A DNA stretch of 64,000 nucleotides from Haliotis cracherodii (lineage: Eukaryota), in NCBI RefSeq assembly GCF_022045235.1, contig NW_027266286.1, forward strand, positions 71,610,001 through 71,674,000, written 5' to 3'. The translations under genes were made by a program, and so were the position numbers. Below the pieces are notes generated by a model. The model did no database searches. It was not told the DNA's origin and worked only from the letters and a program-made list of their open reading frames with translations. Position 1 is the stretch's first letter; each line of letters opens with the position of its first letter. This document shows, piece after piece, positions 3,935-47,796 of this stretch.

Positions 3935-4140
3935 CCTGTTCCCCTGCATCACATATGCTGCAGTCAGCAGGGTTTTTTTATCCCACCTTGTATGCTGTGA
4001 ACTCGACCAAAGGTACCAGTATGGCGTTTATGCGCTTGTCTGATTATGAAGCAATACACCCGATGGACATTTCTAGAAAGAACCCTCGCGATTAATTGCT
4101 GCCGATAGCTTCCGAAGGACATCATCCAAAGATGTATCCC
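3935..4140 (-). pseudogene. Orphan 3' fragments of PHYHIP-like paralogs
   Basis: 4071-4140 encodes GDTSLDDVLRKLSAAINREGSF*, like the copy 5 tail; 3935-4026 encodes HTGTFGRVHSIQGGIKK/PADCSICDAG with a frameshift. Confidence 0.7.
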
Positions 4141-4173
4141 TAGCTTGTCTGATTATGAAGCAAAACACTCATT

Positions 4174-4838
4174 CTAAGATGTATCCCCAACACTGCATAT
4201 GCTGCAGCCCACAGTCTTCCTTATCCCACCTTGTGAGCTGTGACCTCGACCAAAGGTACCAGTATGGGAGAGATCTCTGTCTGTCATATTCACGGCCTCT
4301 GTATACATAACCTCCACGTGGACACGAGGACAGTCCTTTGTTCTGTATGTTGAGAATGTCTTTATCAAAAACTTGTTGGAGCACGAATCAAGCTTGAGCA
4401 GGTGCATATTACAGAAACTGTCTGCCTCTGATCCTGAACGTGTCAGGACCAAGGTCACGTAGTGAACACGCGTGCGTGTGATTCTGCGTGGGGACCTGCG
4501 TGGTGGCTTGCAGTAGAAGTCAGCAAAGTAAAGTTTTGCTGAATCATCAAAAACCTCACTCAGTTGCACTTTCACTCTCGTGTCTCCAAAAGGCGACTTA
4601 TCTGGCAGTTGTCCATTCGTAAGTGTCACGTTAAAGAAAAGACCCTTCAGTCTCCCATTTATTGGACAGCGTTGGTCTCCGCCATTGTCCTTTAGATAAG
4701 GTTCCATGATGTTATTGTGGTTCTGCCGAATGTCCACGAAATAGGAGGACGGCTTGTTGCGATAGAGGATAGATACATTATCAAAGCTGCCTCCACTGCA
4801 ATGGTCCTCGGCTTTGCGGAGCAGCTTTTTTAGATATT
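4174..4838 (-). CDS. PHYHIPL: PHYHIP-like C-terminal-domain protein, copy 1 (type A), exon 2; exon 1 at ~5609-5642; ~232 aa
   Basis: AG acceptor at 4839-4840, then (E)YLKKLLRKAEDH..LYRNKPSSYF..KDNGGDQRCPINGRLKGLFF..SPFGDTR..LYFADFYC..HYVTLVL..EVMYTE..CSIC; these motifs match the PHYHIP/PHYHIPL C-terminal domain as I recall it; stop at 4174-4176. Confidence 0.85.
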
Positions 4839-5608
4839 CTGATACAGGAAATTTAAAATGAACACCATGATAACATCCGGTGCAGTACTGAAAATTAGAA
4901 ACTTAAGATGAGATAACGTTTGTAATATCAAAACGTCAACGCCATAGAATAATCAGTCTTGATTCCAAAGAGCCATCCCAATGATGTTTCTAGGTTTGCC
5001 GGCACCATACCCGTGCTCGTGGGTTTCACCGAAGTGGTAAACGTCTGAGACCTGCATCACTCCGGGCTTTCCTACCACATAAAGCTGACACGCCGTGATA
5101 TAACTGGAATACTGTTAAAAGCGGCGTTAAACCGAACTCACTCACTCCACAGGGCGTACAAGGAAAAATAGGGATGACAATGATATGCATGTGTCAGTTG
5201 ATTTGTGACTCCAGGTGGAAGCAGGAAGATAGAGCATAAGAAGTGTGAAACATTCTTTGAAAAGCAATCCGTTCAAGCATCATTATATTTGTATTGTAAA
5301 TTATATTTAATGAAATTTGTTTTGTTTAAAATGTTTAAAAACGATCTGCAAATGCTTTTTGAGTAAAGAATTGTGACCTTGACTTTTGTAGCTATCAGTT
5401 AATTATATTCGCATCCAACCAAGATATTCATTAATACNNNNNNNNNNNNNNNNNNNNNNNNNNNNNNNNNNNNNNNNNNNNNNNNNNNNNNNNNNNNNNN
5501 NNNNNNNNNNNNNNNNNNNNNNNNNNNNNNNNNNNNNNNNNNNNNNNNNNNNNNNNNNNNNNNNNNNNNNNNNNNNNNNNNNNNNNNNNNNNNNNNNNNN
5601 NNNNNNNN

Positions 5609-5642
5609 NTTTCTCGACATTTATACTCCCTCCTTCAGCCAT
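5609..5642 (-). CDS. Exon 1 of copy 1 (MAEGGSINVEK)
   Basis: ATG at 5640-5642; homologous to the complete exon 1 of copy 5; the last base and donor fall in an N gap. Confidence 0.75.
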
Positions 5643-5780
5643 GACAGATAGGATAGTTGTTGTCCTACTGCTTTTCCAAGCTCTTCTTCACAAAGTGACT
5701 TGAGTAGTCATGTTGGATCGATATATACCTCGATACGCTTGTGTGTAAACAAGATCCCTTTGTCCCCTACATCAATGCTG

Positions 5781-5813
5781 ATCCTAGAACTGTTACTTTC
5801 CCTTTCGATTTCG
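5781..5813 (-). promoter_or_regulatory. ISRE/IRF element (CGAAATCGAAAGGGAAAGT) with adjacent degenerate GAS, copy 1 promoter
   Basis: Three GAAA cores spaced by 2 nt at 5795-5813, ~153 bp upstream of the ATG; conserved in copies 3 and 5. Confidence 0.7.
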
Positions 5814-8459
5814 CATTCTAAGTATGTAGTAAGATAACCTTTATGATAATTAGAGGTCATGAAGACCCGATTTTCATTCAAAGTTAAGATACAGCCCCCT
5901 TGTGATTTTATAGACATTACATCTATCACAACTACGCCCCCAGTACGCCATGCTTGTCGTTAGAGCCGACGTATGAGGACTGAGTGCTTACAGGGCTTGG
6001 CTCATTGTATGTACCTAAGGCTAGGGTCGTTGCTCATACTGTCCCCCACTGTTTCCACTAAAGAAGTTCGATACATCTGATCAATCACCTGCATGTGTTT
6101 TACGTTTCTTCCCGTTTATGCAGTCGATGTGCAGTTAATGACTTATCATAGACGTTTCCTTAATATGCAGTATGAAGAAAATCTTGATATTTCACTCTTA
6201 TGAATTGGCCGAAAATCTATGTGTGTCAAATGTTTAAGAAACCAAACGTCATTCAATTCCAACGTTTATGAACTAAAATACATACTTACATGTCTTGCTT
6301 AGGTATAAGTACCCTTCACTGGACTGTTCGTATGAGTGTAATTGTGTTCGAATCCCAGATCACCACAAGATAAGTGAGTGAGTGACTTTGACTTTACACA
6401 TCCTTCGCAATAATTCTGGCAATACCATATGGAGACACCGGAATTAGGATTTTCACGTTTAACACGTGTGGGGTCACTCGGCGTTGTGAATAAATCACCA
6501 GGCTACCCCACGGCCCATAACCAATAAAGATCGTAAATGCATATGAAACATCTTAGCGTGTGGGTACCCAGAACACTACCATTTTAACTCCAGCAGGTAT
6601 GTATCACTTTGGAAAGTTAATTAACCCAATGATAAAATAAAACTCAGGTACACAACAAAAAGCATTAAACTTTGCAACTCCTATACAAAACAATTGACAG
6701 ATACACAAAAGACATGGTCTTTTGTCATAAACTTACTGTTTTCATTTGGTTTCATAAAAGAGTGTGAAATCAAAACACCTCCCTTGTGGGCTTGGTTATA
6801 CACTTATCACAGATGTGAAGTGCCTGTGTAAAAACGTTCATATCTGTTACTGAAGAAATATACTTGACATAGGGGGCAGAGTTACCTTGATACGTGGCGG
6901 GTAGAGTTACCTTGATACGTGGCATTTATCAGAAGAAATCTCTACTGCATTACACACACACGTTTCAGCTCTATCGTTCAAGTGACTGGAGAAACGCTGA
7001 CATAGAGTCCATAACAAAGTTTGCATTTGATTTGGATAGTTGTTGTGGTAGCAAATAATTATGTCATAACATACATGACATTTAAATGAAGCATATAGTT
7101 AACGTGAGAGACTGGCTCTCTTTATCTGTGACATTGATGATATATTGATGAATCAAATCAAATCAACATAGATCACCATTTATTCAATAATTCAAACGAT
7201 TAAAACGATCATTAAGATCAAAACGAATGACAGCAAATAATTATGTCATAACATACATGACATATATGTGAAGCAATTTGTTAACATGAGAGACTGGCTC
7301 CCTTTATCTGTGACATTGGTGCTGTATTGATGAATCAAAACAAATCAAACCAAATCGTTTTATTCAATATTTTGGTGAGACGCAACAATGAGAATGTGCA
7401 ATGTGAGCTTCAAACATCAGAATCAAATAATAAGGTTAACAATGACAATGTCAGAAGTACACTTTGAAGCAAACAATTAATTACGTATACATGTATATGG
7501 AAATAACAATATTTTACATGGTTAATACTTAAGGCACACAAAAAGTAAATAAAAGACAAGAGTGGAATATTGGTAAAAACCAGACACTCAAACATTGAGA
7601 GATGTTAATCATTGCAGTGATACAACATTTACACTTACACTGCAATTCATGAGCCAACTATTCCAGCACACCCCAAACACCATCTTGAGTCTTCATGAGC
7701 GTTCAGCTCGTAAAATCCCNNNNNNNNNNNNNNNNNNNNNNNNNNNNNNNNNNNNNNNNNNNNNNNNNNNNNNNNNNNNNNNNNNNNNNNNNNNNNNNNN
7801 NNNNNNNNNNNNNNNNNNNNNNNNNNNNNNNNNNNNNNNNNNNNNNNNNNNNNNNNNNNNNNNNNNNNNNNNNNNNCTTTACTAACTATTCATCACAAAG
7901 TGTTAATATTTTCTAGCTTTTTAGATATTTTTATCAAAGTTTAAGCATTTGTAATGGGTTTGTGTGACAAAGTGGATATTGGATGTCATTTTCTGCCTCA
8001 TATTTGTTGGTAAAAAGAAGACAGTGACTTGATGATTATATAGATTTTTCATGATTAATTAATTATAAAATGCAAAATGGTTCCTACGTTATTTTTTTCA
8101 CATGAATCAATTTGTCTGGTTTCATTCGTTGTAGGTAAAACAGTATCTTGAAATGATTACAATCCCAGATTTCAGAAATCCACACCAAAATGCATTAAAC
8201 ACAGTACCTTTTTAGACTAATGTTGCCACACATTTATGATCAAATCCATGAGCTTAAAAGCAACTCTACATGTGTATCTCATCTGATTATGTGAAATAAA
8301 ATAATATTGTCTGTACGAAAAAAATATATATACTGTGTGACACATTACTCTAAAGACATGTCATAGTATATACACATTATACTAATACAAACACCTACTC
8401 GGGCGATCTGTCATTGAATCTGCTCAAGATTATTTAATATAGTCCCATCAATCGAGGTA

Positions 8460-9250
8460 TCAATAGTAATCATCAGAATCATAGCTAATACCCATATCAT
8501 CATAATCGTTTGTATATCCAAAAGGATCGTCATAGTCAAAACGAACGTCATCGTCAGAAAGATCGTCATCGTCAAAAAGATCGTCATATTCCACGGGATG
8601 TACATATCTTCTTCCGGGGTCGACTCCGACATTGCAAATCCCACACCCACCAGCTTTTGGTATTCCCCCAACACTTTGCCCTCGTCCATATATCCCTGTA
8701 GAACTGAGGATCCTGTTTGATATGTCTATATCTTCTGTATAGAACACATCAACAAATACTTTGGATTGTTTCAGTGTTGAGTACCCAAAGCTTTGCTTTC
8801 GCAAGTACAAGTTGTTCATGACATTGAGTTTGATCAGGTTCTCTTTACAGAACATATCTGCTTCTGAATCAGCCTTTGTCAGAACCAAGGTAACATAATG
8901 TATTCGGTTGGGTGAAGGTTTGCAAAAGAAATCGGCAAAGTACAAATTTGATGAGCCATGAAACACCTCACTCAGCGGAACTTTAACTCTTGTGTTTCCA
9001 AATGGCGATTTTTCTGGTATAACACCTCCCTGTAGTGTAACCCCAAAAAAGAGTCCGCCAAGTCTGTTATTGATTGGACAGCGTGGATCACCTCCATTGT
9101 CTTTGAGTCTCGGTTTCATGATGCCATTGTACTTATTTTTGATATCCTGAAAGTAGCTGTTGGGTTTATTCCGGTACAGGTAATATACACCTTCAGATAT
9201 GCCACTCTGGCTGTGATCATTAGCTTTATCTAACAGCTTCTGAAGATATT
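8460..9250 (-). CDS. PHYHIPL: PHYHIP-like protein, copy 2 (type B, Asp/Tyr-rich tail), exon 2; ~274 aa with exon 1
   Basis: Acceptor ttttacag|AATAT at 9251-9252; intact domain with CGIC, then an acidic tail; frame matches exon 1. Confidence 0.88.
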
Positions 9251-9510
9251 CTGTAAAATGAATATGTAAATTATGTTTTAGTATAGATATCATGGAAGCC
9301 ATGTTAACATCGACGAAAAGTATTTCAAATTATTGTGACTCTCACAGATGAGAAATTATGTCCCATTCAATACCGACTGCATATCTGTCCGCCGCATTAT
9401 ACAACAGAAATACAAAATATGTCAGACGAGATCGTTTGAGCGATTCCTTTAGCACACAAAATACTATGAAAATACTGTAATAGTCATCTTGGACATAAGT
9501 ATATCCATAC

Positions 9511-9544
9511 CTTTTCCTGCATCTGTGCTTCCTCCTACAGCCAT
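9511..9544 (-). CDS. Exon 1 of copy 2 (MAVGGSTDAGK+G)
   Basis: ATGGCTGTAGGAGGAAGCACAGATGCAGGAAAAG|GTATGG; phase-1 donor joins exon 2 in frame (G|AA = Glu). Confidence 0.8.
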
Positions 9545-9681
9545 GATTGCAATATGGTTGCCGATACCTGTTCTGTGCATATGTTGGCTCTATTAATAGA
9601 AACAGAGTACTGTTGTGCAATAGGCCAGATTCTTTGTATTGAGGTAACTGACATAATGCTCAAGCGTATACAATGACAAGG

Positions 9682-9712
9682 TTCCTTGAATTTCTACTTT
9701 CATTTTCACTTC
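9682..9712 (-). promoter_or_regulatory. GAS (TTCCTTGAA) plus ISRE-like (GAAGTGAAAATGAAAGT) composite, copy 2 promoter
   Basis: GAS at 9682-9690; ISRE-like at 9696-9712, ~152 bp from the ATG, the same position as the type A element. Confidence 0.65.
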
Positions 9713-10389
9713 TATTTTCTGTGAGGTATAAGAAAGGCATTTTAGGTTATAACCAGTGTAATGCTAGATAGGGTATGATTCCCATGCAGGAAGTATCCGA
9801 GGTAGGATCAACACTACTTAGTGGTATGCAAGGAGTATATTATGGTATGCTAGGAGTCGGTTATTGACGTAGAAACCGTTGCATGATGTGCACACGTCAA
9901 ATCAGAGGTAACAAAAAGTCGTATATTTTCACTCATATTTTAACTAACTCACTCATTAGCTGCTTGATCTGAACCAAACGCTGCTTTACTGTTTAAACCG
10001 TTTTATGTAAGGTATCACCTATCTCTCCGATCGGTTTTCTTATCCGACTTCTTTCTATACAAAAGATGCTTTTGACACCATATATAATGGCTGCTTTCGT
10101 TTACGTGGTTCTAGCCAAAGCCACATATTCCCGAGAGCGTGGCTGATATCATATCCCATGTTCCCGAAGCGAATGTCTGGTTCCCTGGATGACCTGACAA
10201 AATGTGTTCATGGCCTAAAAAGCACTTATCGACTCCTTCATTTGTCTCGAAGTCGTAATCGAACATATCAAGTCTCTAATACCTTGAACTACGACGCATG
10301 TTCTTGATTCAGACATGATTCGGTATAGAATAGGTGCAATTGTTAAATCTTTGATAACACATATATCAAATAGACACAATGCTCAAAAC

Positions 10390-11460
10390 ATTATTATTAT
10401 ATTTACTATTTACATATTAGAATAAGAAATGCAGCAAAGAGGTTTTTGGTGATCCTGGCACGTCCGGGCTGGTTAGGCTCAACATCAGCTCAGGGCCCTT
10501 GCCCTACACGTTGCCCAGATAGCGAATGGGACTTCTCCTAGCAAGCGCTGCCTAGTCGAACCCACCCAAAACTTTTCGGAGAATGTGAAGACTCCCCAAC
10601 ACTGGAGCCTTCTGCATTACCCAGGTTGTCAGAAGAGCTGTATTCCTGGTAGCAAACCAGGGCACTCTCCCAATGTCAGTCAACAGATTGGGAGGTACAA
10701 ACCTAAGGCACAGAGAACAATGGGGAGTCTGACAACTTGGCACTTGGGATGCAAGCGTGATATTTCGAAAGCGAGGTCTGCATATTTGCCATGTTTTTCC
10801 TGAATCTTGTTAATTACATTAGTGTCAAAAGGGACAAAAAATTATCAAATAGGACAAGATTAGGTTTTTTGACCTGGATACGTCTGAGGCTGTGTACGGA
10901 CCTATTCTAAAGAATTTTGTATTTATCATTTTCCATGACGCCCTCTACATATTCCGGGTTGTACCATGGATGGACCTCTGTGTCAAAGCCACAAGCATAG
11001 CAAAGACGGTAATAAAATGATCGAGCCACTCCATCACGTCGCTTAAGATACTGTGTTTGTGCCAAAGCTGGGCATCCACTGACATTGTTGTTGACAGTCT
11101 CATTGAATTCATTGCATATTGTACATTTGATATTTACATGTTGATGCCAAATTACATGTTGACGGTTTCGAGTGGAAGTGACTGGCCTTCTGTTTTACTT
11201 TTGAGGCCAGTCGTCTCTATCCAAGCGAAGGACTCCGCAGGGTTGCTGATCTTCTCAACACACTGCATAACAACTCGAAGCAGTGGACCAGCGACACTGA
11301 CATTTACTTCTTCCGACACAAGATGAGAACCAAATTTGTTTCAAATTCGATTTTCCATATGGCCGGCACAACAGCTGTAATGAAAACCTATTCATTGTTA
11401 TTGTTCGTCTTCGACATGTGTAACGTTGGCCTCCTCCCATATTACCCTAACAAACTGTGA
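10390..11460 (-). mobile_element. Decayed RLE-type (R4/Dong-like) non-LTR retrotransposon 3' fragment; duplicate at ~20875-21925
   Basis: Remnants GCPALAQTQYLKR.DGVARSFY, P.LVLFD and VL.LRFVPPNL; (TAA)n tail; homologous to 50500-53470. Confidence 0.7.
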
Positions 11461-12856
11461 TAAACGTCATGCAAGGATGTCTCTGAGAGACGTTTGCAAA
11501 GTGGCATTAAACTAAACTCACTGTTTATATTTCCTTAACACTAACACGTTTAGCTTTTGTGAATATAGACCAACACAACACCGATTAGAGAAGCACTCTG
11601 AACATGCATTATCCCCTTTACATCATATAGTCAGATTAGTGCACCTTCCTTGTTTTCGATAAATTGAGACAACACTACAATACATCAAGATCTAACCTCT
11701 GTCTACCTGGACTAAGCATTCACTTAAATTTGCAATGTACATATTCGTATTCTTATTCTAATGTACAAGCTATCTCTTTTAGATTCTGATGCCCAAATTA
11801 GCTGTATATCCATATCAACACTGTCTCTCCTTTCCCACCAGAGACGTATATCAGGTAGCTGATACTACTGACAAGAGCCTCACATGAGCCTCACATGACA
11901 TGTGCCACGTATACGCAACGTTTCAGGAAGTGGAGCATTCCTGATTGGGCTATTGTTGGTAACCCCATATTAAGGCAGTGAGGTGAGGTGAGATGACACG
12001 CCGCGATAAACTATCATATAGCGACATCTGTGCCTGTGTGTTCCACCATGCACTGCACGGGGCAGGACAAGCCCACACGGGTTATTAATACCCTCTGTCA
12101 CCATTACAAGTTAACCTGAATGAATACAAAAACATACACATGATAAAGCGAGAGTTATTAATACAGTTTGGATTATTTATACACAGAGACCATATTCGAT
12201 TAAATGGTCATTTTATAGTATGTAACCATTGCTAGGGGAAGGTCTCCTGACACCTAGTAGTTGATCAGATGAATTTGCATGAATGTGCCTACCATTAAAA
12301 TGTTGATTGAATTTTCTTTAAATGATTTTCCAGAAACCTAGAGGACATGCTTATGAGCATTTACAATTTTGGTTAAAGGCATTATTCACCTTTTGTTTAG
12401 AACAAATTGTTGACCCATGTGGATTTCCAAAAAGTTAGTTGGACTAATTAATAAAGTAGCTATCGATTTGTTCTTCCAGTACTCAACAAATTAAACAAAA
12501 ATATAGCATCCATCAAGAATTTGGGACTTTTTGGAACTTTTATGAGTTTTAAATCTTAAACTGAAAAATACAGTTGTACAGACTTGCAGTTGTAATCAGC
12601 ATAGTTTCAATTTGCTAAATTCAAGTGTCTCCATTCACTGGGGCGTTCAATGTTTGGTCTCCAGAAGGAAATGCGATTTTATAGGCTATTTACAAGATTA
12701 ATCGAATCACATGAAAGACGAAAGAGTGAGCTATCTGCTCACATCAACTTAGTTAGCTGAAACGCCAAGGATCAAGTATTGGGGAACTATTCAGATCCGG
12801 GATGCCTGAGTTGTTACAATTTGAAAATGAAAAATAATTCATGTACAGATAGCTTT

Positions 12857-13584
12857 GATGCACGTCAATAGATGCTGGCATCTTTTGTTTCCTTATAACT
12901 ATGATGTACGTCAATAGATGCTGGCATCTTTTGTTTCCTTATAACTATGATGCACGTCAATAGATGCTGGCATCTTTTGTTTCCTTATAACTATGATGTA
13001 CGTCAATAGATGCTGGCATCTTTTGTTTCCTTATAACTATGATGCACGTCAATAGATGCTGGCATCTTTTGTTTCCTTATAACTATGATGCACGTCAATA
13101 GATGCTGGCATCTTTTGTTTCCTTATAACTATGATGTACGTCAATAGATGCTGGCATCTTTTGTTTCCTTATAACTATGATGCACGTCAATAGATGCTGG
13201 CATCTTTTGTTTCCTTATAACTATGATGCACGTCAATAGATGCTGGCATCTTTTGTTTCCTTATAACTATGATGTACGTCAATAGATGCTGGCATCTTTT
13301 GTTTCCTTATAACTATGATGTACGTCAATAGATGCTGGCATCTTTTGTTTCCTTATAACTATGATGCACGTCAATAGATGCTGGCATCTTTTGTTTCCTT
13401 ATAACTATGATGTACGTCAATAGATGCTGGCATCTTTTGTTTCCTTATAACTATGATGCACGTCAATAGATGCTGGCATCTTTTGTTTCCTTATAACTAT
13501 GATGCACGTCAATAGATGCTGGCATCTTTTGTTTCCTTATAACTATGATGCACGTCAATAGATGCTGGCATCTTTTGTTTCCTT
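12857..13584. repeat. 46-bp minisatellite, ~16 units (~2 units at 23920-24003)
   Basis: Unit gatgyacgtcaatagatgctggcatcttttgtttccttataactat. Confidence 0.95.
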
Positions 13585-13616
13585 TTGTAGTATCTATGCT
13601 TCCTCCTTCAGCTGTA
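13581..13616 (-). pseudogene. Decayed exon 1 (TAEGGSIDTTK) of a lost paralog; duplicate at ~24001-24035
   Basis: GCTGAAGGAGGAAGCATAGAT is identical to copy 5 exon 1, but ATG is ACA and the GT donor is lost. Confidence 0.6.
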
Positions 13617-14751
13617 CCTTTTACTGTCAATAAGGTCCGGGACAGAGCATACAAATCTTTAAAGATGTTTTGTCTTTTCGATGCCACAAAATGGAATTCA
13701 TACGCCAGACCATCTAAATACAACAACACCCTACCATATCTGATATAGACATAGTGTTTTGCCAGTATCTTCTCTTCAGCCCATCAGTACAGTTGAATAT
13801 TTCCATCAGTAAACACCGCTTGAGCATTCACAGTGTCTTTATTCTTTCTATAGCATGTAATGTAATGTATTTGTACATATATTTTGTTCCAGCATATGTG
13901 TAATATGATAAAGAACGTAGAGGAAAGTAAGGGGTAAAAATTTATTTCAAATGCACGGCGCACGTAAGCACAATGTAAATATAAAAACAGAAACCACACA
14001 CAATATGAAATACGAGTAGAAAGTAGTGGAATGCTTGATACTGATTGGTAAAAAGGAGGTATCCTTTTTCCTGCAGACACCTCATTTCCATGAAATCCCT
14101 TCTCACTGTGACTTCCAAGAAATGACTTGGTTAAGTCCAAGCTCTGCACACATACAACAGGTTGCGAAAAACTAATTATATTTCTACGGAGCGTTATTTT
14201 ATCAATTCTTTTGAAAAACGATGCATTTTGTAACAATCTGGAGTTAGTCAAGAGTAAAAGTAAATAGAATTGAGCGTGCACGAGTGTGTATGGTCTTACA
14301 CCGCCTTTAGCAATATTCAAGCAATAAGACGCCTGGGAACACTAACAATGGGCTTTACACATGTGGGAATCGAACCCGGGCCTTCAGCATGACGCGTAAA
14401 CGCTTTAAACACAAGGGTACCCCCATCTTCCCGAAAGTGAGAGAGAATAATTATGGTAGGACTGGAAGAATTTATAGAGAAGAAACAAATTCCAGGCCCC
14501 CTTAGAAAATCAAATGGTCGGTCACTGATGACAAGAGCAATTTGTTGGCAACATGTGCAACAACCGTATGACTGCCAACCATGGTGCCGCAAGCACATAT
14601 TAAAATTTACAGGTGGTCATTGCCATTTACACAAAATATCAGCTGTGTGTTTCTCGTCACATTTAATGACAGGCTATTATCGCTGATAATTCGGTGTATG
14701 TTCAGGCGTTCATGCACTTGTCTGATTATGAAGCAAAACACTCGATGGGTA

Positions 14752-15395
14752 TTTCTAGAAGGAACCCTCGAGATTACATCCTGCCAGTAGCTTGGGAAGC
14801 AGCTCATCCAAAGATGTATCACCAAACATTGCATATGCTGCAGCCCACAGTCTTCCTTATTCCACCTGGTGTGCTGTGGCCTTGACCAATGATACCAGTA
14901 AGGGAGAGAAACCTGTGTGTCATGTTCACGGCCTCTGTATACATGACCTCCACGTGAACTGCAGGACGGTCCAGTGTCTCGTATGTGCCAGATAAGTATG
15001 TCTTTCGCAAATAAATGTTGGTGTACGAATCAAGCTTCAGCAGGTGTGTCTGACAGAAACTGTCTGCCTGTGATCCTGAATGTGTCAGAACCAAGGTGAA
15101 TCATCAAAAACCTCGCTCAGTGGCATTTTCACTCTCGTGTCTCCAAAAGGCGACACATCTGGCAGATGTCCATTCCTAAGTGTAACGTTAAAGAAGAGAC
15201 CCTTCAGTCTCCCATTTATTGGACAGCGTTGGTCTCCGCCATTGTCCTTCAGATAAGGTTCCATGATGTTATTGTGGTTCTGCCGAATGTCATCAAAATA
15301 GGAGGATGGCTTGTTGCGATAGAGGGTAGATACATTATCAAAGCTGCCTTCACTGCAGTGGTCCTCGGCTTTGCGGAGCAGCTTTTTCAGATATT
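14752..15395 (-). pseudogene. PHYHIP-like copy 3, chimeric pseudogene, exon 2
   Basis: 61-bp deletion relative to copy 5 at 15099/15100 removes LYFADFYC..HY and shifts frame; a 1-bp insertion near 14825 gives CNVW*; acceptor at 15396-15397. Confidence 0.85.
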
Positions 15396-16129
15396 CTGAA
15401 ATAGGAAATTTAAAATGAACACCATGATAACATCCGGTGGAGTACTGAAAATTAGAAACTTAAGATGAGATGACGTTTGTAATATCAAAACGTCAACGCC
15501 ATAGAATAATCAGTCTCGATTCCATAGGGCCATCCCAATGATGTTTCTAGGTTTGTCGGCACCATACCCGTGCTCGTGGGTTTCACCGAAGTGGTAAACG
15601 TCTGAGACCTGCATCACTTCGGGCTTTACCTGCTTTACAACTCTGTGTGAAAGTCTCATCACGTAGTAAACTTTCGAAAGAGTGCATGCTCTGTAATAGG
15701 CATGCTTTTGACTATGACAGCCACGTTATTAAGGCAAAATAGGGATGACAATGATATGCATGTGTCAGTTGATTTGTGACTCCAGGTGTTCGCGAAGCAG
15801 GACGATAAAGCATAAGAAGTGTTTAACATTCTTTGAAAAGCAATCCGTTCAAGCATCATTATATTTGTATTGTAAATTATATTTAATGAATTTGTTTTGT
15901 TTAAAATGTTTAAAAAAGATCTACAAATGAAAGCTTTGCTTTTTGAGTAAAGAATTGTGACCTTGACTTTTGTAGCTNNNNNNNNNNNNNNNNNNNNNNN
16001 NNNNNNNNNNNNNNNNNNNNNNNNNNNNNNNNNNNNNNNNNNNNNNNNNNNNNNNNNNNNNNNNNNNNNNNNNNNNNNNNNNNNNNNNNNNNNNNNNNNN
16101 NNNNNNNNNNNNNNNNNNNNNNNNNNNNN

Positions 16130-16163
16130 CTTTCTCGACATTTGTACTCCCTCCTTCAGCCAT
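16130..16163 (-). pseudogene. Exon 1 of copy 3 (MAEGGSTNVEK+G)
   Basis: 34-nt exon identical in layout to the other copies; donor falls in an N gap. Confidence 0.7.
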
Positions 16164-16300
16164 GACAGATAGGATAGTTGTTGTGCTACTGCTTTTCCAA
16201 GCTCTTCTTCACAAAGTGACTTGAGAAGTAATGTAGGTCGATATATACCTCAATACGCCTGTGTGTAAACAAGATACATTTGTCCCCTACATCAATGCTG

Positions 16301-16333
16301 ATCCTAGAACTGATACTTTCCCTTTCGATTTCG
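16301..16333 (-). promoter_or_regulatory. ISRE/IRF element, copy 3 promoter
   Basis: actttccctttcgatttcg at 16315-16333. Confidence 0.65.
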
Positions 16334-19766: not shown

Positions 19767-20029
19767 CTGTAAAATGAATATGTAAATTATGTTTTAGTAT
19801 AGATATCATGGAAGCCATGTTAACATCGACGAAAAGTATTTCAAATTATTGTGACTCTCACAGATGAGAAATTATATCCCTTTCAATACCGACTGCATAT
19901 CTGTCCGCCGCATTATACAACAGAAATACAAAATATGTCAGACGAGGTAGTTTGAGGGATTTCCCCTTTTAGCACACAATTACTATGAAAATACTGTAAT
20001 AGTCATCTTGGACAGAAGTATATCCATAC

Positions 20030-31820: not shown

Positions 31821-31888
31821 ATCCTAGAAATGTTACTTTCGCTTTCGATTTCGCATTCTAGGTATGGAGTAAAATAACCTTCCTGGAA
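31821..31888 (-). promoter_or_regulatory. ISRE (CGAAATCGAAAGCGAAAGT) and perfect GAS (TTCCTGGAA), copy 5 promoter
   Basis: ISRE at 31835-31853; GAS at 31880-31888. Confidence 0.72.
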
Positions 31889-34295: not shown

Positions 34296-35579
34296 CTGCA
34301 AGGAGAAGACCAGTTTGTAACTTGCATGATGATTGACCCTTTATATATATACATGTATATATATTTTATTTTATTGTTTTCATCTGTTTGTGGAGAAAAC
34401 TATTAAAGACATTGTAAATGAAACTGAATGATATGGCAACGTTGGCTGAAGATGTGGTTACCTTCTTTTTTTTTATAAAATATTTCAATTCAGTGGACAT
34501 AATTGTAACATTGACACATGAGGTATATACGTGTAGCAATTCATGGTATCTGTATACTTGATCAGATATGTGTAAATATATATATTGGATTGACTGATGA
34601 AGAATATTAAGTAGATCTGTCAAACTTATTAATCTTCTATTTTCGTTGCGATAAACTTTTCTATTTTACATACATCTTTCAATATTTTTAAGAAAAATGG
34701 AAAGCATATGGAGTTTTCTTAACGCTTGACTGGGGAATGTATTTTTTGGCAAGAAGAATTATATGGTTGAAAAGATATGTAGAATGGTAATATGAATATC
34801 ATTTGCAAGTTTCTAGTTTAGGTACACTTCTAATCCTAACCATAATTCCTTTACAAAAGTGCATTCTATATACTGGTATAAGTTTTCAGAATCAGAGCTA
34901 CAAAAGGCTCATATATATATATATCTGTGTAGCCCTGTTAGATATGTTAGATATTCAATAGACATGTGAAAAAGTAACGCGTAAAAAATTATCTTTTTTA
35001 AACAAATAAATGTATTCTTATTACACTGGAAAAAAATCACACCCGATTTATTGTCTTAATTATGAGTACGCTAATCACACAAAACTAGAAATCGAACCAA
35101 AATTTTAAGTTAGACGAGTAAACGATTCATCCCCTCGGCTAACCCAGCACACTTTGGTTCAAGAAATGAGAAAATTGTGATAAAATCCCCGCTGGACTAC
35201 CGCCAAGCCTTTACCGTTATTCTTAACAATTACAGGTACTTGGTATATATCCAGACTCAGCCAGCCTGGACTAAACAATAACCCTCGAACTGAATTATTT
35301 ACTTTGACGAGCAAACGTTTCAGCCACTAGGCTAGCCAACTGAACTTTGGTTCGGGAATAAGAAACTGTTGATTAAAACCCGCTAGACTGTCGCAAAGCC
35401 TTGACCGTTTGTTGATAATTATAAGTATAAGGGTGTGCACATATAGCAAGAGTCTACAACGCAATTGGATAAATTTACTATGTATTTTTTCCTATAGATT
35501 GTGATGCACAAATTAGCTATATATCTCTGTCAACACTGTTTCTCCGACGTATATCAGGCAGCTTGAGCCTAACGACATG

Positions 35580-35606
35580 TTCCACGAATATGCAACGTTC
35601 CAGGAA
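35580..35606. promoter_or_regulatory. Tandem GAS pair in intron 1 of copy 6
   Basis: TTCCACGAA-N9-TTCCAGGAA; a third site, TTCCAGGAA, at 35870-35878. Confidence 0.6.
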
Positions 35607-35654
35607 ACGGAGCACTTTCTGACTAGGCCATTGTTGGCAACCCTATATTCAGGC

Positions 35655-35709
35655 AGTGAGGTGAGGTGAGGTGACACGTGAGGTGAGCTGAGGTGAGGTG
35701 AGGTGAGGC

Positions 35710-35775
<66 letters not shown>
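35655..35775. repeat. (GAGGT)n and (GA)n microsatellites
   Basis: Read directly from the sequence. Confidence 0.9.
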
Positions 35776-35777
<2 letters not shown>

Positions 35778-36138
35778 TGAATGTTCTGGAAGGACAAAGT
35801 AGAAAGCAGTATCACGTATTCCTGCTGCACTATGTCACGACCCACGTTATCAATGCGGGTATTTTTGTGTTCCAGGAAGTAATATTCTCCAAATTGGCAG
35901 TTGTTAGCCTTCGTTTTGACGCTTAGTTTTGTGTAAATTACTTTTTTCATATTCTTCAATTCCAATTTATACTGACTAAGAGGTTACAGCTGTTATCACA
36001 AATGAAACTCTTGGCTGTGTGTGTCAATTGTCAATTGATTGAAAGGCCTATACTGTTCATGAATAACGATGAGCAAATACAACCAACAAACGTGTTAGAA
36101 ATTGCGGAAATCAACCACATTGATTATTGTATAACTAC

Positions 36139-36166
36139 CTTTATCCTGGTGCCCTCCTCTGGCCAT
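36139..36166 (-). CDS. Exon 1 of copy 6 (MARGGHQDK+G)
   Basis: ATGGCCAGAGGAGGGCACCAGGATAAAG|GTAGTT; joins exon 2 in frame (G|CC = Ala). Confidence 0.72.
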
Positions 36167-36682
36167 GTTGCTGGAACAGTGAGTAGAAGCTACGTGTGAC
36201 CACCGTAACACGAGTTTATTGCTTGTTGTCTAACTTGCAAGTGTAACAAGAACTGTGTATGATTGTGAGTCAGATCTTCTTATGTGCGGGAAAACCGGTT
36301 CTATTAATAGATCCATGTAATGGTTATGTTATAGATTATTACCTCTTGAAAAGTTAAATGTCCGAGGGCAGCACTATCGTCGATCGTGGCATCAATGCTC
36401 CAACAGCGTCTCGACATCACAGTTGTTTAGATGAAGTTTTTATGGGAGGAAAGCCAGAAGTGATGCAGGTCTCAGACGTTTACCACTTTGATTAAATCCA
36501 CAAGCACGGGTATGGTGCTGACAAACCTAGAAACATAATCAGGGATACCGGGATTCGAACCGACCGACTTAAGTGAAATCCACTTACACGGTATAGGCAT
36601 TTTAGTAGGAGAAGGAAAAAAGTAGTTCCCATGGAATTGTGGGATCAATGACATTAGCACATGGTCTGTGACTGAGTTTAAA

Positions 36683-37111
36683 GGCCTTAACAAGCAATAT
36701 CCAAGCTATAACAAGTAGGCCTGGAATTTACTCTGGGCCTTAACAAGCAATATCCAAACTATAACAAGTAGGCCTGGAATTTACTCTGGGCGTTAACAAG
36801 CAATATCCAAGCTATAACAAGTAGGCCTGGAATTTACTCTGGGCCTTAACAAGCAATATCCAAGCTATAGCAAGGAGACTTGAAATTTATTCTGGGTCTT
36901 AACAAGCAATATCCAAGCTATAACAAGTAGGCCTGGAATTACTCTGGGCCTTAACAAGCAATATCCAAGCTATAACAAGTAGGCCTGGAATTTACTCTGG
37001 GCCTTAACAAGCAATATCCAAGCTATTACAAGTAGGCCTGGAATTTACTCTGGACCTGGCCTTAACAAGCAATATCCAAGCTATAACAAGTAGGCCTGGA
37101 ATTTACTCTGG
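36683..37111. repeat. 53-bp minisatellite, ~8 units
   Basis: Unit ggccttaacaagcaatatccaagctataacaagtaggcctggaatttactctg. Confidence 0.95.
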
Positions 37112-37498
37112 GAAAGACAAACCAGTGGTTGAAAAAATGACAAAACGATCCTCGACATGTGGGCAAGATGACACAAAATCAGTTGTTCTCCAGAATCTCC
37201 GTAGGTCATATGTATATCAAAAAGAACAAAGTCAAAAATAACATGACTGAGCTGACATATCTGCCACATTCCATAACTCTCCCAATACGTATAGCTGACA
37301 GTTCAAGTCTGACAAAGAATGCTCCTTACTTTTGCAAAGGTACAACTCAGGGGCCTGTCAAAATACCCATTCGCAACAAGTGACCCAGGGGTAAGAATAC
37401 CATGCAAAGCTCACTGCGTCTCAGTTGTACCGGTTCCTTGAGGGAGTCGCCATCTTTTCAAAACAGTTTTCATTTTGGAACGTGTTACCTTTTTTTGC

Positions 37499-38345
37499 CT
37501 ATGGCACATTCTTCTTCCTAATTCCGCCTGGCGTGGTATGACCTTGACCAAGGGCGCCTGTAAGGGAGAGAACCCTGTATGACATGGCCTCTGTATATAT
37601 GACCTCCAAGTGAACTCCAGATCGGTTCAGTGTTCTGTATGTACCAGTAAAGAATCTTTTTCTCAAAATTTAATACATATTCTCATACGGATTCATTTTG
37701 ATCAAGTTCTTCTAACAAGATTGGTCAGCTATGGGCCAGTCGCTGTCAAAACCTAGTTCATATAATGAATGTGTTTGCGTGACGGCTTGCAGTAGAAAAT
37801 CAGTAAATTATAGAAATGCTGATACATCAGAAACGTCCCTCAGTGATCTTGTCCCTCGGGTTTTCAGCAACCCATGCTTGCCGTTAAAGGCGACTATGCT
37901 TGTCGTAAGTGGTGATTAACGGGATCGGGTGGTCAGCCTCGCTGACTTAGTTGACAAATGTCATCGTATCCCAATTGCGTAGATCGATGCTCATGATGTC
38001 AATCACAGAATTATCTTGTCCAGATGCGATGATTTTAGACCGTCGACATATAGCTGAGTGCGGCGTTAAGCATCAAAATACACAAAAAACCATCATAAAG
38101 GCAGCCTGTCTGGTAGACCACTGTTACACAGGATCGCCCCAAACAGACCCATCAGCTTCCCATTGATTGGACATCGTGTGTCCTTCCACTCTCCACGTGT
38201 GAGGGTCCATGATGCTGCAGCGTCTTCTTCAAATATTTCTGAAGTAAGAGGATGTTTTTTTTGCGATACAGAGCATCTACCCATGTTCCTCCATTTCCTC
38301 CATCGCAGTATTCATCTACTTCATGTAGCAGCTGCCGTAGATATA
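37499..38345 (-). pseudogene. PHYHIP-like copy 7, decayed and interrupted by a SINE
   Basis: Acceptor at 38346-38347; remnants VYLRQLL..LYR..RCPINGKL.GLF..FYCKPSRKHIHY..GQGHTTPGGIRK with stops and frameshifts; SINE at ~37851-38085. Confidence 0.82.
37851..38085 (+). mobile_element. SINE family 1 inside pseudogene copy 7
   Basis: Homology to the other family 1 copies. Confidence 0.8.
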
Positions 38346-38879
38346 CTGCAATAATAATATTTATTTGAAAATTAGGATTTGTTACTTATTGTTTGTTTGT
38401 ATATTGTTTAACGGCATATTCAATAACATTCCAGCTATATGACGACGTCCTGACTGACTGGCGCATACACATCAGCAACGGTCCCCACCGTCGGGGTTAG
38501 ATGAAACAGTCACCAAGCCTGACCACCCGATCTCCTTTTGTCGCCTCACACAAACAGAACAAGTTTGCTGGGAACTACTGTATCCGGAAATCCACATGGT
38601 CGGTCTATTCTATTAGTGAGTGAGTGAGTGATTTTGGTTTAACGCCGCGTTTAACAGTATTCCAGTCCTATCACGGCGTGTCAGCTTAATGTAGGAGGAA
38701 AGCCCGAAGTGATGCAGGTTTCAGACGTTTACCAATTCACGAGCACGGGTATGGTGCTGACAAACCTAGAAACATAATCGGGGCGAACCGGGTTTCGAAC
38801 CCACAATTATAGGTTTCTGGCGTGCTCAAGAGACGCAACTCTGCACAGCGAAGTCAAGTCTTAAAAGACACATCAAAAT

Positions 38880-39044
38880 GGGGGCGGTCGGGTAGCCTAG
38901 TGGTTAAAGCGTTCGCTCGTCACGCCGAAGACCCGGGTTCGATTCCCGACATGGGTACAATGTGTGAAGCATCTGGTGTCCCCCGCCGTGATATTGCTAG
39001 AATATTGCTAAAAGCGGCGTAAAACTATACTCACTCACTCACTC
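38880..39044 (+). mobile_element. tRNA-derived SINE family 2
   Basis: GGTAGCCTAGTGGTTAAAGCG..GGTTCGATTCCC head, (ACTC)n tail; copies at ~14270-14425, 24690-24845, 43495-43640. Confidence 0.82.
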
Positions 39045-39317
39045 ATGATCAGTGACTTGGTTGACTGTTTAACATTGAGCCCAAGGCCATGAATCGTTGT
39101 TCATGTGCCTTGTTTACCTGGCCCATACTCGATCATATCTTGGCAACGTGATATGGCTGGTATATTTTTTTTAACTGCACAACTACTTGTACGTTGCTCA
39201 CACCCACTTGAGCCCACTGACGTATGAAAGTCACTCCAGTGTTATACTAGCTGTGTAGGGTGTGTGTAATTCAAGCCAAGCTGTCTACTCCAGCCTACAC
39301 TGGCTATTGATTACGGA

Positions 39318-39344
39318 TTCTACGAACCGCAAACGTTCCAGGAA
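39318..39344. promoter_or_regulatory. Tandem GAS pair in intron 1 of copy 7
   Basis: TTCTACGAA-N9-TTCCAGGAA, same spacing as in copy 6. Confidence 0.6.
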
Positions 39345-39924
39345 CTCTAAACTAGGTCATTGATATAACACTGACAATTACAACCCTGCAGAATATGACG
39401 TAACAAAATACAGTGGCATTGTTATCATACCAATGTAGCGTATGGCGCATTCTCACGCACACACTGGCTATTGATCTTGTCCAGTAAGCCTGATGTTTGT
39501 CTGCTGACATAAACAGCAACAACTCAGTTAGTGAGTGAGTATGGTTTTACGCCGCTTTTAGCAATATCACGGCGGGGGACACCAGGAATAGACTTCACAA
39601 ACAACTCACAGACAATGATCGGCCCGTTAGACGGGTACAACTAGTACTCCTTAAACCCGGTCATTTTAGACGTTGTTGACGGTGCACTCAGCAGTATTCC
39701 AGCATTGTACGGCGACCTGTACATAAACGAGTCTGCACCAGACAATCCAGTGACTGGTATTATCAGCAACATCCCACGGCGTCGGGGAGCGATAACACAC
39801 ACTCTGACAGGTCACCTGACCACCCAAGGGAGCCTGACCACCCGATCCAGCTAAGGCTGCTTGGGGAACAATTCAAACCACGTCAGTAAATGCAGTTTCC
39901 ATAACAGTAAATAGGAAGAAGTAC

Positions 39925-39949
39925 CTGTCCGAGTCCCCCCCACGGCCAT
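39925..39949 (-). pseudogene. Exon 1 of copy 7 (MAVGGTRT+G)
   Basis: ATGGCCGTGGGGGGGACTCGGACAG|GTAC, phase 1. Confidence 0.6.
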
Positions 39950-43490: not shown

Positions 43491-43494
43491 TATA

Positions 43495-45309: not shown

Positions 45310-45310
<1 letters not shown>

Positions 45311-45367
<57 letters not shown>

Positions 45368-45405
45368 ACCCACACTCTATTTCTCTCTCTCACTCACTCA
45401 CTCAT
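45311..45405. repeat. (CA)n microsatellite
   Basis: Read directly from the sequence. Confidence 0.9.
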
Positions 45406-45736
45406 TAAGCAAAAAATAGCATATGCATGAACAATTCAACTTTCTCAAAAACAGATTTTAATTCACATTTCTGCAAACGACAGACACGTTAAAATCGAAA
45501 ATATATTTATTTCCCAAATATTATTTAAACTGGCGAAAATGTAAGTTCGTACATCACATATGGTATTGATATCAGTCACAAGAATTAAGTATTGATCAGT
45601 TTGTGTACAGTTTTTATAGTCAAACATCCATTATAGTGTTTATAGGTGATTCATATGGCACTGCTGAGAGACCAATCTCGACCTTATGACGGCCATCTAC
45701 AATAAAAACATTTGCGAAATAAATACTGGTGTGTTT

Positions 45737-46359
45737 TCAAATTTGAACACAGCATATTTCACAACCAGATGTTTTAGGTATGCCTCCTGAGCTACTGCCT
45801 CTCCCCATCACATCAGTTTCAGTCAGATCCAGACCTTTTATGTTCACTTCATTCGTATAGAACACTTCAACCCACACTTTGTCCTGGCGGAGCGTTTTAT
45901 ACGTGCCCCCTTCCTTCCTCAGAAATACGTTCTGCTTTTTGTCCAGACGAACGAGGTGTTCCCGACAGAAACGATCTGCTTCTGAATCACGCTCTGTCAG
46001 GACCAATGTGACGTAGTGGTTATCACTTTGACCTGACATACAGTAAAAATCCGCGAAGTACAGCCTGGCTGACCTATCAAAGACTCGCTCCAGGGGAACC
46101 TTCACTCTGGTGTCTCCATATGGTGATTTAGTTGGTAGACGACGGTTCCACAGCGTCACCCCGAAGAACACACCTTCATGTTTCCCGTTTATGGGGCAGC
46201 GTGGATCTCCTCCGTTGTCCTTCATTTGTGGTGTCATGATGTTGTTTTGAAGTTGGGTGAAATAGTCGCCGGGTTTATTGCGGTAAAGACCATCCACTTC
46301 GTCGAAATACCTGCTGGAACAATGCTTTTCGGCCTTCTCGAGTAGTGTTTCAAGATAAT
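45737..46359 (-). CDS. PHYHIPL: PHYHIP-like protein, copy 8 (most divergent), exon 2; ~216 aa with exon 1
   Basis: Acceptor ttattgcag|ATTAT at 46360-46361; DYLETLLEKAEKH..LYRNKPGDYF..SPYGDTR..LYFADFYCM..HYVTLVL..EVFYT..CEIC. Confidence 0.88.
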
Positions 46360-47768
46360 CTGCAATAAATAATATTTACCATCAATGCCTATAAGATGTA
46401 ACAAAGAATCGTCCATATTGATTATATCTGCTACTGTTTTTATGTTACCAGTACAACATTAGATTCGAGTGTTAAGAAACTATTTCTGTTCATCAAGTAT
46501 ACGCGACGCAGAATACGCAGTAACCCAGACGCTCACACCTAGACTTAGCTCCTCCGCTTGGGGTCGCTGCTCTCCTTTCCAGGAACAACGGAAACCAGTC
46601 AAGCGTAGCTATTAAGCATAGCCAAGTAAAGCTGGCGCTGGTTGCCCCTGGTATTGCTTGCAATCCACCTGAAAGCAACCCAAAACTGGGACACTTTGGC
46701 GGTTGCTGTGTATCTGGCGTACACTCTCCGCCCGAGAACATCCCACAGATGCTCTAACAAATATCAGGGGGGCATAGCGGGCCAGTTCAATGTCGCCCGA
46801 GAACATCCCACAGATGCTCTAACAAATATCAGGGGGGCATAGCGGGCCAGTTCAATGTCACTATGACTTCTCGTAGGAGTCCTGGGCACGCATTCTGCCG
46901 ATAGTGAACGTAACGAACGGACGCAAAATGTCGTCAACATATCGCTTGAGAAAGAGTCTCACGTATATTCTTCCCGGTGACTGTGTTTCTCGAGATGCAA
47001 ATACACATCTATGCGATCCACATTACCTATTTGCGAATCACGGCTTGAAGATTATCGCACTTCATAACAACGTTCATATAACCTTCACAACTGAAAATTA
47101 TTGCTATCGGGCACAGTGTAAAGGAATCTCCGAGNNNNNNNNNNNNNNNNNNNNNNNNNNNNNNNNNNNNNNNNNNNNNNNNNNNNNNNNNNNNNNNNNN
47201 NNNNNNNNNNNNNNNNNNNNNNNNNNNNNNNNNNNNNNNNNNNNNNNNNNNNNNNNNNNNNNNNNNNNNNNNNNNNNNNNNNNNNNNNNNNNNNNNNNNN
47301 NNNNNNNNNNNNNNNNNNNNNNNNNNNNNNNNNNNNNNNNNNNNNNNNNNNNNNNNNNNNNNNNNNNNNNNNNNNNNNNNNNNNNNNNNNNNNNNNNNNN
47401 NNNNNNNNNNNNNNNNNNNNNNNNNNNNNNNNNNNNNNNNNNNNNNNNNTCAAAACTGTTCTTGTTATCAATAGATAATTTCGTACAACAGAAGTATAAG
47501 AGGAAGACGAATTCCAACACCTACCGTTAAAAACCAGCTATATGTAGCCCACCTAAAAGCAAGTACAGGTTCCAGGATATGCATATTAACAAAATGATTG
47601 TTGGTGGATAGTAAAGAGAACTAGCCCAGCTGAGAAGGGCAATCGACTCCGGTGAATGCTTCAGATCACATGCAGTAAACGTAATGTAAAGGAAGGTTCG
47701 GCATATTATACGAGACCACAGTGCGTTCTCTCCTTTGTCGAAGCAGTAATGAGTACTATCATATATAC

Positions 47769-47796
47769 CTGGTACAGCGCTTGATCCCTCTGCCAT
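47769..47796 (-). CDS. Exon 1 of copy 8 (MAEGSSAVP+G)
   Basis: ATGGCAGAGGGATCAAGCGCTGTACCAG|GTATAT; joins exon 2 in frame (G|AT = Asp). Confidence 0.72.

Follow-up and report, generated by a model that had tools for sequence, protein, structure and literature searches.

What is the tandem array of PHYHIP-like genes in the black abalone, Haliotis cracherodii, and is it, as a first-pass annotation of the DNA proposed, an inducible immune effector family? We addressed this question in a 64,000-nt stretch of contig NW_027266286.1 (assembly GCF_022045235.1, positions 71,610,001 to 71,674,000 of the forward strand), which we refer to as the window and whose own numbering is used for all coordinates not given in Mb. 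It contains eight copies of the PHYHIP C-terminal domain (PHYHIP_C, PF19281), all co-oriented on the minus strand, of which six have an open exon 2 and two are pseudogenes. The firm part of our answer is that these copies form a real, expressed tandem family of PHYHIP_C-only genes, annotated and yet undescribed, that evolves by unequal crossing-over. The interpretation of the cluster as immune effectors is partly supported: the account we prefer, a lineage-expanded, birth-and-death family of PHYHIP_C-only genes that would be switched by IRF and STAT transcription factors and, speculatively, would resemble ADP-ribosyltransferases (ARTs), is held tentatively, at slightly less than an even chance.

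A tandem family of PHYHIP_C-only genes

Six long minus-strand open reading frames (ORFs) in the window matched PHYHIP_C with 103-133 bits (E 2.6e-29 to 1.7e-38), compared with a PF19281 cut-off of 27 bits, and had no other Pfam match. Coverage reached positions 10-219 of the 221-position profile, and matches that clear the gathering score across the greater part of the profile assign these ORFs to the family. Searching the window with the same six ORFs by tblastn returned all eight minus-strand copies together with a relic at 3973-4138; in window order, the copies are named c1, c2, p3, c3, c4, c5, p7, and c6. Each has a polypyrimidine-AG acceptor, after which exon 2 opens on the second base of a split codon (phase 1) ahead of a conserved Tyr-Leu, as well as an upstream mini-exon starting with ATGGC (peptide MA.G...). 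The coding part of exon 1 runs from 25 nt in p7 through 28 nt in both c5 and c6 to 34 nt in each of c2, p3, c3, and c4, ending in a GT donor wherever this is readable (c2, c3, c4, c5, p7, and c6), while intron 1 spans 260 nt in c2, 263 nt in c3, 5485 nt in c4, 1843 nt in c5, and 1409 nt in c6. As the exons were searched unjoined, their joining was checked for frame continuity by arithmetic and translation and by identity to RefSeq proteins: the conceptual c5 product is RefSeq P0001 (221 aa) and that of c6 is RefSeq P0018 (216 aa). The full products are 216-290 aa long, with just 8-11 residues preceding the domain. By direct reading, these N-termini are short and hydrophilic (MAEGG...) with no hydrophobic leader, and the proteins are presumably cytosolic and devoid of a signal peptide. 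The first-pass annotation had described eight co-oriented paralogs (six intact, two pseudogenes) plus relics, each joining an exon 1 of 25-34 nt in phase 1 to the PHYHIP C-terminal domain, and all of this agrees with the Pfam scores, the tblastn matches, and the acceptors, mini-exons, and readable donors.

Evidence that such a gene is expressed comes from the transcript contigs of four coded runs, which were compared with positions 33400-39399. A 1252-nt contig of run X5 and a 1401-nt contig of run X7, both on 33400-34295, stop exactly at the first base of c5 exon 2 (34295), and a further 79-87 letters are placed by bin depths at 36139-36217. Both runs have 61 letters in the 36000-36199 bin, corresponding to 36139-36199, and the resulting end of exon 1 at 36139 is the predicted donor, with zero depth in both runs across 35400-35999 of the intron. 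The contigs of run X19 extend unspliced across the c5 intron, and this run behaves like genomic DNA from a relative. The c5 gene is transcribed and spliced as modelled, its exon 1 (36139-36217 by contig and depth arithmetic) consisting of 28 nt of coding sequence from the ATG at 36166 and a 5' untranslated region of at least 51 nt. The spliced transcripts anticipated for the family have accordingly been seen for the c5 junction. A single PHYHIPL-like unigene appears in the annotation table of one abalone herpesvirus transcriptome paper.

A profile scan of the H. cracherodii genome gave no fewer than 24 PF19281 matches, the majority of them on this chromosome, at 4.5, 20.3, 29.8, 46.9, and 71.6 Mb, with the present cluster extending past both window ends. 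RefSeq already annotates the genes as PHYHIP-like, and our literature search for invertebrate PHYHIP members (abalone, oyster, mollusc) found no description of them, the first-pass annotation likewise having been aware of none. A second PHYHIP_C subtype was also noticed at loci L010 and L011 (4.54-4.59 Mb), in which DNNGDPYSAIN replaces DNGGDPRCPIN. It has a low-complexity insertion of 40-70 residues ahead of the VEFLYTE strand, requires an upstream exon, and forms a cluster of at least five copies at 4.52-4.61 Mb.

The individual copies are arranged as follows, with all exon coordinates on the minus strand. Downstream of c1, the relic joins the remnant of a c4-type C-terminal tail (c4 aa 285-305 at 71% identity by tblastn) to a weak domain fragment (c1 aa 127-174 at 41%). 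The open c1 exon 2 (4174-4838, 221 codons plus stop, matched by Pfam and tblastn) has an 8-codon insertion after FYCKP and has lost its C-terminal tail. Its exon 1 coding part (5610-5642, MAEGGSINVEK) has its last base and donor hidden by the assembly gap at 5438-5609, so the intactness of c1 is judged on exon 2 and the 33 visible nt of exon 1. The open exon 2 of c2 (8460-9250) encodes an acidic, D/Y-rich tail and is preceded by an exon 1 at 9511-9544 with the donor GTATGG; its recent duplicate c3 has an open exon 2 at 18949-19766 and exon 1 at 20030-20063, and the acidic tail amounts to ~50 residues in the two. Between them lies the pseudogene p3 (exon 2 at ~14680-15395, exon 1 at 16130-16163), the donor of which is unread, exon 1 being flush with the gap at 15978-16129. 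The open c4 exon 2 (25420-26123) is separated from exon 1 (31609-31642, donor GTAGAG) by an intron mostly filled by a 39-nt minisatellite (27113-30957, 98.5 copies, 85% match), and long repetitive ORFs on both strands (MPCLVRCCPTVIN...) are simply translations of this minisatellite. The open c5 exon 2 occupies 33658-34295. The p7 exon 2 (37514-38345) is an old pseudogene with multiple frame breaks and ~40% identity by tblastn, its exon 1 (39925-39949) ending in the donor GTACTT, while c6 consists of an open exon 2 at 45737-46359 and a coding exon 1 at 47769-47796 with the donor GTATAT. None of the six assembly gaps in the window falls within any exon 2: two adjoin exon 1 of c1 and p3, as stated, three are intergenic (7720-7876, 18260-18391, and 22155-22286), and one (47135-47449) lies in c6 intron 1.

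Other repeats accompany the cluster. Contig depth in all four runs reached 1e5 to 1e7 at 36400-36600, 37800-38200, and 38600-39200, with many back-joints at ~38881-39045, and these stretches of the c5-p7 interval and p7 intron 1 look like very high-copy dispersed repeats resembling short interspersed elements. A 53-nt tandem repeat (8 copies, 36683-37112) lies upstream of c5, and a very regular 46-nt repeat (16 copies, 98% match) occupies 12849-13584 in the spacer of the first of the two duplicated units described below, with a homologous stretch in the second. Beyond the cluster, a 30-nt repeat (15 copies, 63511-63971) gives rise to a repetitive PSPSDLILHN ORF, and, by sequence reading, of the ORFs at 59220-59729 and 49837-50433 one appears Tc1/mariner-transposase-like (the C-terminal half, DDE-type) and another resembles a reverse-transcriptase fragment.

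Cluster growth by unequal crossing-over

Self-comparison of the window resolved two tandem units of ~10.5 kb within 4540-25081 (4540-14664 and 15097-25081) that are 94.5-98% identical, and the gene at their junction is p3. In p3, the likeness to c1 extends from the promoter through exon 1 and the intron into the first 65-70 nt of exon 2, and the remainder, downstream of ~15326-15331, is c4-like; the LYFADFYC...HYV core has been lost to a private deletion of 61 nt, which also causes a frameshift. This chimera is the product expected from unequal crossing-over between c1 and c4. Such near-identity of the two units would also be found if part of the copy number were an assembly artefact, in which the units were haplotypes or the result of a mis-join, and the N gaps at homologous positions of both units (5438-5609/15978-16129 and 7720-7876/18260-18391, with colinear flanks) could be taken the same way. 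However, a junction copy that is a c1/c4 chimera with a deletion of its own is what a real unequal crossover predicts, and we therefore argue that the duplication is genuine. Furthermore, c2 and c3 differ by tail indels and 18 residues, and H. rufescens P0014 groups with both of them on the tree described next. An artefact is thus very unlikely. As a separate observation, the same underlying sequence seems to be unread or masked in both units at the homologous gap pairs.

A maximum-likelihood tree of proteins from four Haliotis species placed c5 with H. asinina P0002 and c2/c3 with P0013, both of which represent old retained lineages. Lineage-specific duplications are evident as well: c1, c4, and the copy at 71.605 Mb each pair with an H. 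rufescens orthologue (P0012 for c1 and P0003 for c4), and separate duplications occurred in H. asinina and H. rubra. Given this mixture of old retained lineages and lineage-specific duplications, birth-and-death is a fair description of the family, which has the expected marks of such evolution in its two pseudogenes and relic, its 10.5-kb duplication with a chimeric junction gene, and its species-specific duplicates. The turnover proposed in the first-pass annotation is borne out on all of these points.

The wider PHYHIP_C family and its predicted fold

Canonical PHYHIP and PHYHIPL have an N-terminal FN3 domain, and the abalone genes had been thought to have lost it. Pfam found no fn3 match in the ORFs of the window, nor did tblastn find a match in the window to the N-terminal parts of longer relatives or any FN3 exons upstream of the 4.5 Mb-type paralogues. 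A phmmer scan of 1.84 billion representatives gave 640 clusters at E ≤0.001, the best 141 of which were examined. A Pfam fn3 match was present in only 5 of these 141 representatives, and approximately two fifths fall in the 150-250 aa bins, i.e. about the size of the domain itself. FN3-less forms are therefore common among the best 141 representatives, and it follows that the abalone genes are FN3-less, but their having lost the domain is not demonstrated.

AlphaFold2, supplied with an alignment of 38 sequences, predicted the domain with a pLDDT of 94 and a pTM of 0.91. Foldseek with this model returned nothing significant, its top weak matches being exotoxin A and diphtheria toxin, and re-scoring of its top 1000 matches, which are full of immunoglobulin and TRAF chains, left only ARTs. 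The weak structural neighbours of the predicted fold include PARP1/2/3/4/12/13/16 and tankyrase as well as pertussis toxin S1, scabin, EcPltA, and CARDS toxin. Across the 141 representatives, R36, E179, and the cysteines C119, C144, C215, and C218 are near-invariant, as are S91 and Y113. When mapped from the alignment end-points, assuming no gaps at the alignment ends, R36 and E179 of the model would fall on the His/Arg and the Glu, respectively, of PARP1/2/3, tankyrase-2, pertussis toxin, scabin, and DarT. R36 (in YRNKP) would correspond to residues that we take to be His862 of PARP1, His1031 of tankyrase-2, Arg9 of pertussis toxin, and Arg77 of scabin, and E179 (in VEVFYTE) presumably to Glu988, Glu1138, Glu129, and Glu160 of the same four enzymes. 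The four near-invariant cysteines suggest a zinc site.

The LYFAD strand of the family resembles the GxYFA strand of nine abalone PARP domains, and in hhalign comparisons with these nine catalytic domains the LYFA-aYFA segment was the only one paired, at a non-significant probability of 0.1%. A profile search of PDB sequences returned nothing relevant, so that neither this nor the hhalign comparison gave sequence or profile similarity to a known ART family; a fold search of BFVD returned nothing below E 0.03, and a literature search for a link between PHYHIP and ARTs found nothing. Unnamed bacterial and viral clusters from an ESM Atlas feature search scored 0.92-0.94, which is the range of noise, and were set aside. 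It should be noted that the genome has at least 43 matches to the PARP catalytic domain (PF00644). Local clusters of these occur on C80 (at 31, 46, and 52 Mb), on C12 (at 37.25-37.30 Mb), and on C14 (at 14.46-14.53 Mb), and mono-ART PARPs appear to have expanded in abalone.

From the predicted model, PHYHIP_C could possibly be a cryptic ART-like enzyme or pseudo-enzyme and a functional analogue of the interferon-induced PARPs. More speculatively, the domain would be a very divergent ART-like fold in which the Arg of YRNKP occupies the NAD-binding position of strand 1, the Glu of VEVFYTE occupies the catalytic position of strand 5, and the four conserved cysteines form a zinc site. The proteins might then act upon host or pathogen targets as NAD+-using enzymes or, in the case of c2/c3, as pseudo-enzyme decoys with an Asp in place of the Glu, by analogy with the interferon-induced PARPs. 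The most far-reaching version, in which PHYHIP_C, including that of human PHYHIP and PHYHIPL, would constitute an unrecognised divergent ART clade (Arg...Tyr/Ser...Glu plus a Cys4 zinc site) and the domain-only branch of abalone would supply IRF/STAT-inducible, fast-duplicating, NAD+-dependent defence effectors as the molluscan counterpart of antiviral PARPs, is in our estimation unlikely.

Regulatory motifs, selection, and comparison with known systems

The strict interferon-stimulated response element (ISRE) GAAANNGAAASY occurs eight times in the window compared with an expectation of 0.69, a count reached in none of 100 shuffles. Six of them, all in sense orientation, precede the exon 1 ATG by 130-210 nt in c1, c2, p3, c3, and c4. 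In c1 and c4, the element is of the triple-GAAA type GAAATCGAAAGSGAAAGT: that of c1 (GAAATCGAAAGGGAAAGT, 5795-5812, minus strand) is 164-170 nt upstream of the ATG and is copied in p3 (16315-16332, minus strand), while c4 has a double ISRE (GAAATCGAAAGCGAAAGT, 31835-31852, minus strand) 204-210 nt upstream. The ISRE is followed by TTCTAGGAT in c1 and c4, or in c2 and c3 by an exact gamma-activated site (GAS), and further downstream by a TATA-like box. The composite of c2 (9682-9707, minus strand) thus reads GAAAATGAAAGT and then TTCAAGGAA, with its equivalent in c3 at 20177-20202 (minus strand). The same ISRE composite precedes exon 1 in paralogues both at 71.605 Mb and at 46.9 Mb. In a pseudogene at 71.59 Mb, the exon 1 of which was not located, it lies ~3.9 kb ahead of exon 2. 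Lineages that have reached saturation at synonymous sites (synonymous divergence, dS, >2) still share the composite, with the identity of the composite block overall being only modestly above that of its flanks. A different arrangement characterizes c5 and p7. In both, intron 1 contains, ~0.55 kb from its start, two GAS sites in tandem that read TTCCWSGAA N9 TTCGTRGAA in the orientation of the gene and lie amid sequence that does not otherwise align (TTCCACGAA N9 TTCCAGGAA at 35580-35606 in c5; 39318-39344 in p7); p7 has no promoter ISRE. ISRE and/or GAS elements, as expected of genes resembling interferon-stimulated genes, are therefore present in the promoters of c1, c2, p3, c3, and c4 and as intronic GAS in c5 and p7, with c6 having neither.

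Mollusc antiviral responses use IRF and STAT pathways, and few of their effector genes are known. At least two genes with an IRF DNA-binding domain are present in this genome, and oyster IRFs activate ISRE reporters (PMC5557890). From the placement of the motifs, IRF and/or STAT control of most members is probable. The c1/c4 and c2/c3 lineages would be driven by a proximal promoter in which an IRF-type ISRE is combined with a neighbouring STAT-like half-palindrome and a TATA-like box, and the c5/p7 lineage has its conserved GAS pair in intron 1. Given the promoter ISRE and STAT-like sites together with the intronic GAS pair, transcription would most likely be IRF/STAT-switched in the manner of mollusc antiviral or stress genes. 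The IRF/STAT elements claimed in the first-pass annotation hold up as ISREs far above chance and rightly placed in five of the eight copies and as the GAS footprint of c5/p7, but GAS is barely enriched as such. Growth and stress programmes likewise make use of STAT and IRF sites. In an alternative account, the genes would respond to stress in general or to development, e.g. heat, hypoxia, or metamorphosis, with STAT or IRF1-like factors as mediators, and would encode non-catalytic binding modules instead of antiviral effectors. In c2/c3, the putative catalytic Glu is replaced by Asp, and the long acidic tail, which is disordered, would be suited to binding; an enzymatic role of the domain is a proposition of the predicted structure. 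On the other side, the triple-GAAA element has the classical IRF/ISRE form. Nothing in these data separates this alternative from the immune one, and we regard it as quite improbable.

Some ISRE observations fall outside the window's promoters. Genome-wide, the composite ISRE pattern has 20 matches compared with 5 for a control. It was considered as the mark of a wider regulon and rejected as such, several of the matches outside the PHYHIP clusters being copies of one repeat and no recognisable immune gene lying downstream. In the 20.3 Mb PHYHIP cluster (L018, 20351400-20360900), three identical tandem elements, GAAAGTGAAAGTAACATTTGATTAAGAAAGAGCTGATCAA...GGTATG, occur on the plus strand at oriented positions 464, 3169, and 5620, i.e. 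2.5-2.7 kb apart, each having an ISRE followed by a possible donor. Within the window, one further strict ISRE, GAAATTGAAACT (2433-2444, minus strand), is located away from the cluster copies, and no exon 1-like ATG was found nearby.

The rate of replacement was estimated for pairs within this cluster by the Nei-Gojobori method. The ratio of non-synonymous to synonymous divergence (dN/dS) is 0.10-0.27 between old lineages and 0.35-0.41 within the c1/c4 clade, and average selection is purifying to moderately relaxed. The youngest pair, c2 and c3, has 19 nucleotide differences in 262 aligned codons, all 19 of them non-synonymous (binomial P 0.011 over the entire exon and 0.04 over the domain, both from small counts), while the flanking and intronic DNA is 3-4% diverged. 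The replacement-biased divergence that had been attributed to the family is consequently confined to c2/c3 and does not extend to the older pairs.

Several of these results weigh against an immune role. The older paralogue pairs, with their dN/dS of 0.10-0.41, are under purifying selection; neither c5 nor c6 has a promoter ISRE within 600 nt, even though both are intact and c5 is expressed; and GAS sites, at 30 in the window versus 19.6 expected, are not clearly enriched, as 4 of 100 shuffles reach that number. In addition, both c2 and c3 have Asp at position 179, the site of the putative catalytic Glu; none of the best 141 representatives has an immune-type fusion domain, longer relatives containing just fn3 and one hAT fragment and no Death, TIR, or CARD domain; and we know of no immune link for vertebrate PHYHIP and PHYHIPL, which are brain proteins. 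Some of this is what would be expected if PHYHIP-like genes had simply undergone an ordinary expansion in this lineage and served outside immunity, e.g. as tissue-specific adaptors or scaffolds, in which case the ISRE/GAS sequences would be bound by other factors or be inherited promoter sequence of no immune meaning, and the ART likeness would reflect no more than a shared strand arrangement. The constraint on most pairs, the lack of immune fusion domains in the wider family, the orthologues kept across distant Haliotis species (c5 with P0002, c2/c3 with P0013), the expression of c5 in several unrelated runs with no known challenge, and our finding no paper that links the family to immunity all agree with such an expansion. 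It accounts poorly, however, for a strict ISRE that is twelve-fold over expectation and kept at a constant spacing from exon 1 even though coding dS between the lineages is saturated, for a tandem GAS footprint surviving in otherwise unalignable introns, for structural neighbours that are every one an ART, and for a newest pair that differs by non-synonymous changes only. We consider a non-immune expansion a serious possibility, if one that also falls short of an even chance.

Under the IRF/STAT-switched account, which we continue to prefer, the cluster with its ISRE/GAS elements, pseudogene turnover, and one all-replacement pair is a concrete candidate set of effectors, of relevance to work on abalone herpesvirus and on withering syndrome in the endangered black abalone. 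If the predicted ART-like active site (R36, E179, and the four cysteines) were real, it would be the first mechanistic handle for PHYHIP and PHYHIPL. Should induction fail, the cluster would be one more annotated lineage-specific expansion.

How, then, does the cluster compare with systems already known? Vertebrate PHYHIP and PHYHIPL (the PAHX-AP1 family) are low-copy, brain-enriched genes. They share with the abalone genes the Pfam C-terminal family PF19281 and the motifs YRNKP, DNGGDP, LYFADFYC, HYVTLV, VEVFYTE, and CxxC, whereas the abalone genes have no FN3, only 8-11 residues in the N-terminal exon, and a multi-copy, tandem organization with pseudogenes and ISRE/GAS regulatory DNA. The biochemical function of the vertebrate proteins is unknown (PMC7953787). 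The R-S-E ADP-ribosyltransferases (cholera/pertussis-toxin-like, scabin, C3-like) resemble PHYHIP_C in the aromatic-Arg motif of strand 1 (LYRNKP) and a conserved Glu in a late strand; PHYHIP_C differs in having no clear STS motif or ExE/QxE and in not being secreted, and with matches this weak its membership is unproven. The expanded immune gene families of molluscs, e.g. the inhibitors of apoptosis of oysters (PMC8917759), offer the same tandem, lineage-specific expansion with pseudogenes, except that their induction on challenge has been measured whereas the abalone cluster is known from sequence and c5 transcripts. Finally, rapid evolution of antiviral PARPs is established, and to the interferon-induced members of that family (mono-ARTs of the PARP9/12/13/14 type) the likeness extends from the PARP structural neighbours and the YFA strand motif (GAYFA in PARPs, LYFAD in PHYHIP_C) to promoters of the ISRE type, the turnover of genes, and indications of adaptive change in both.

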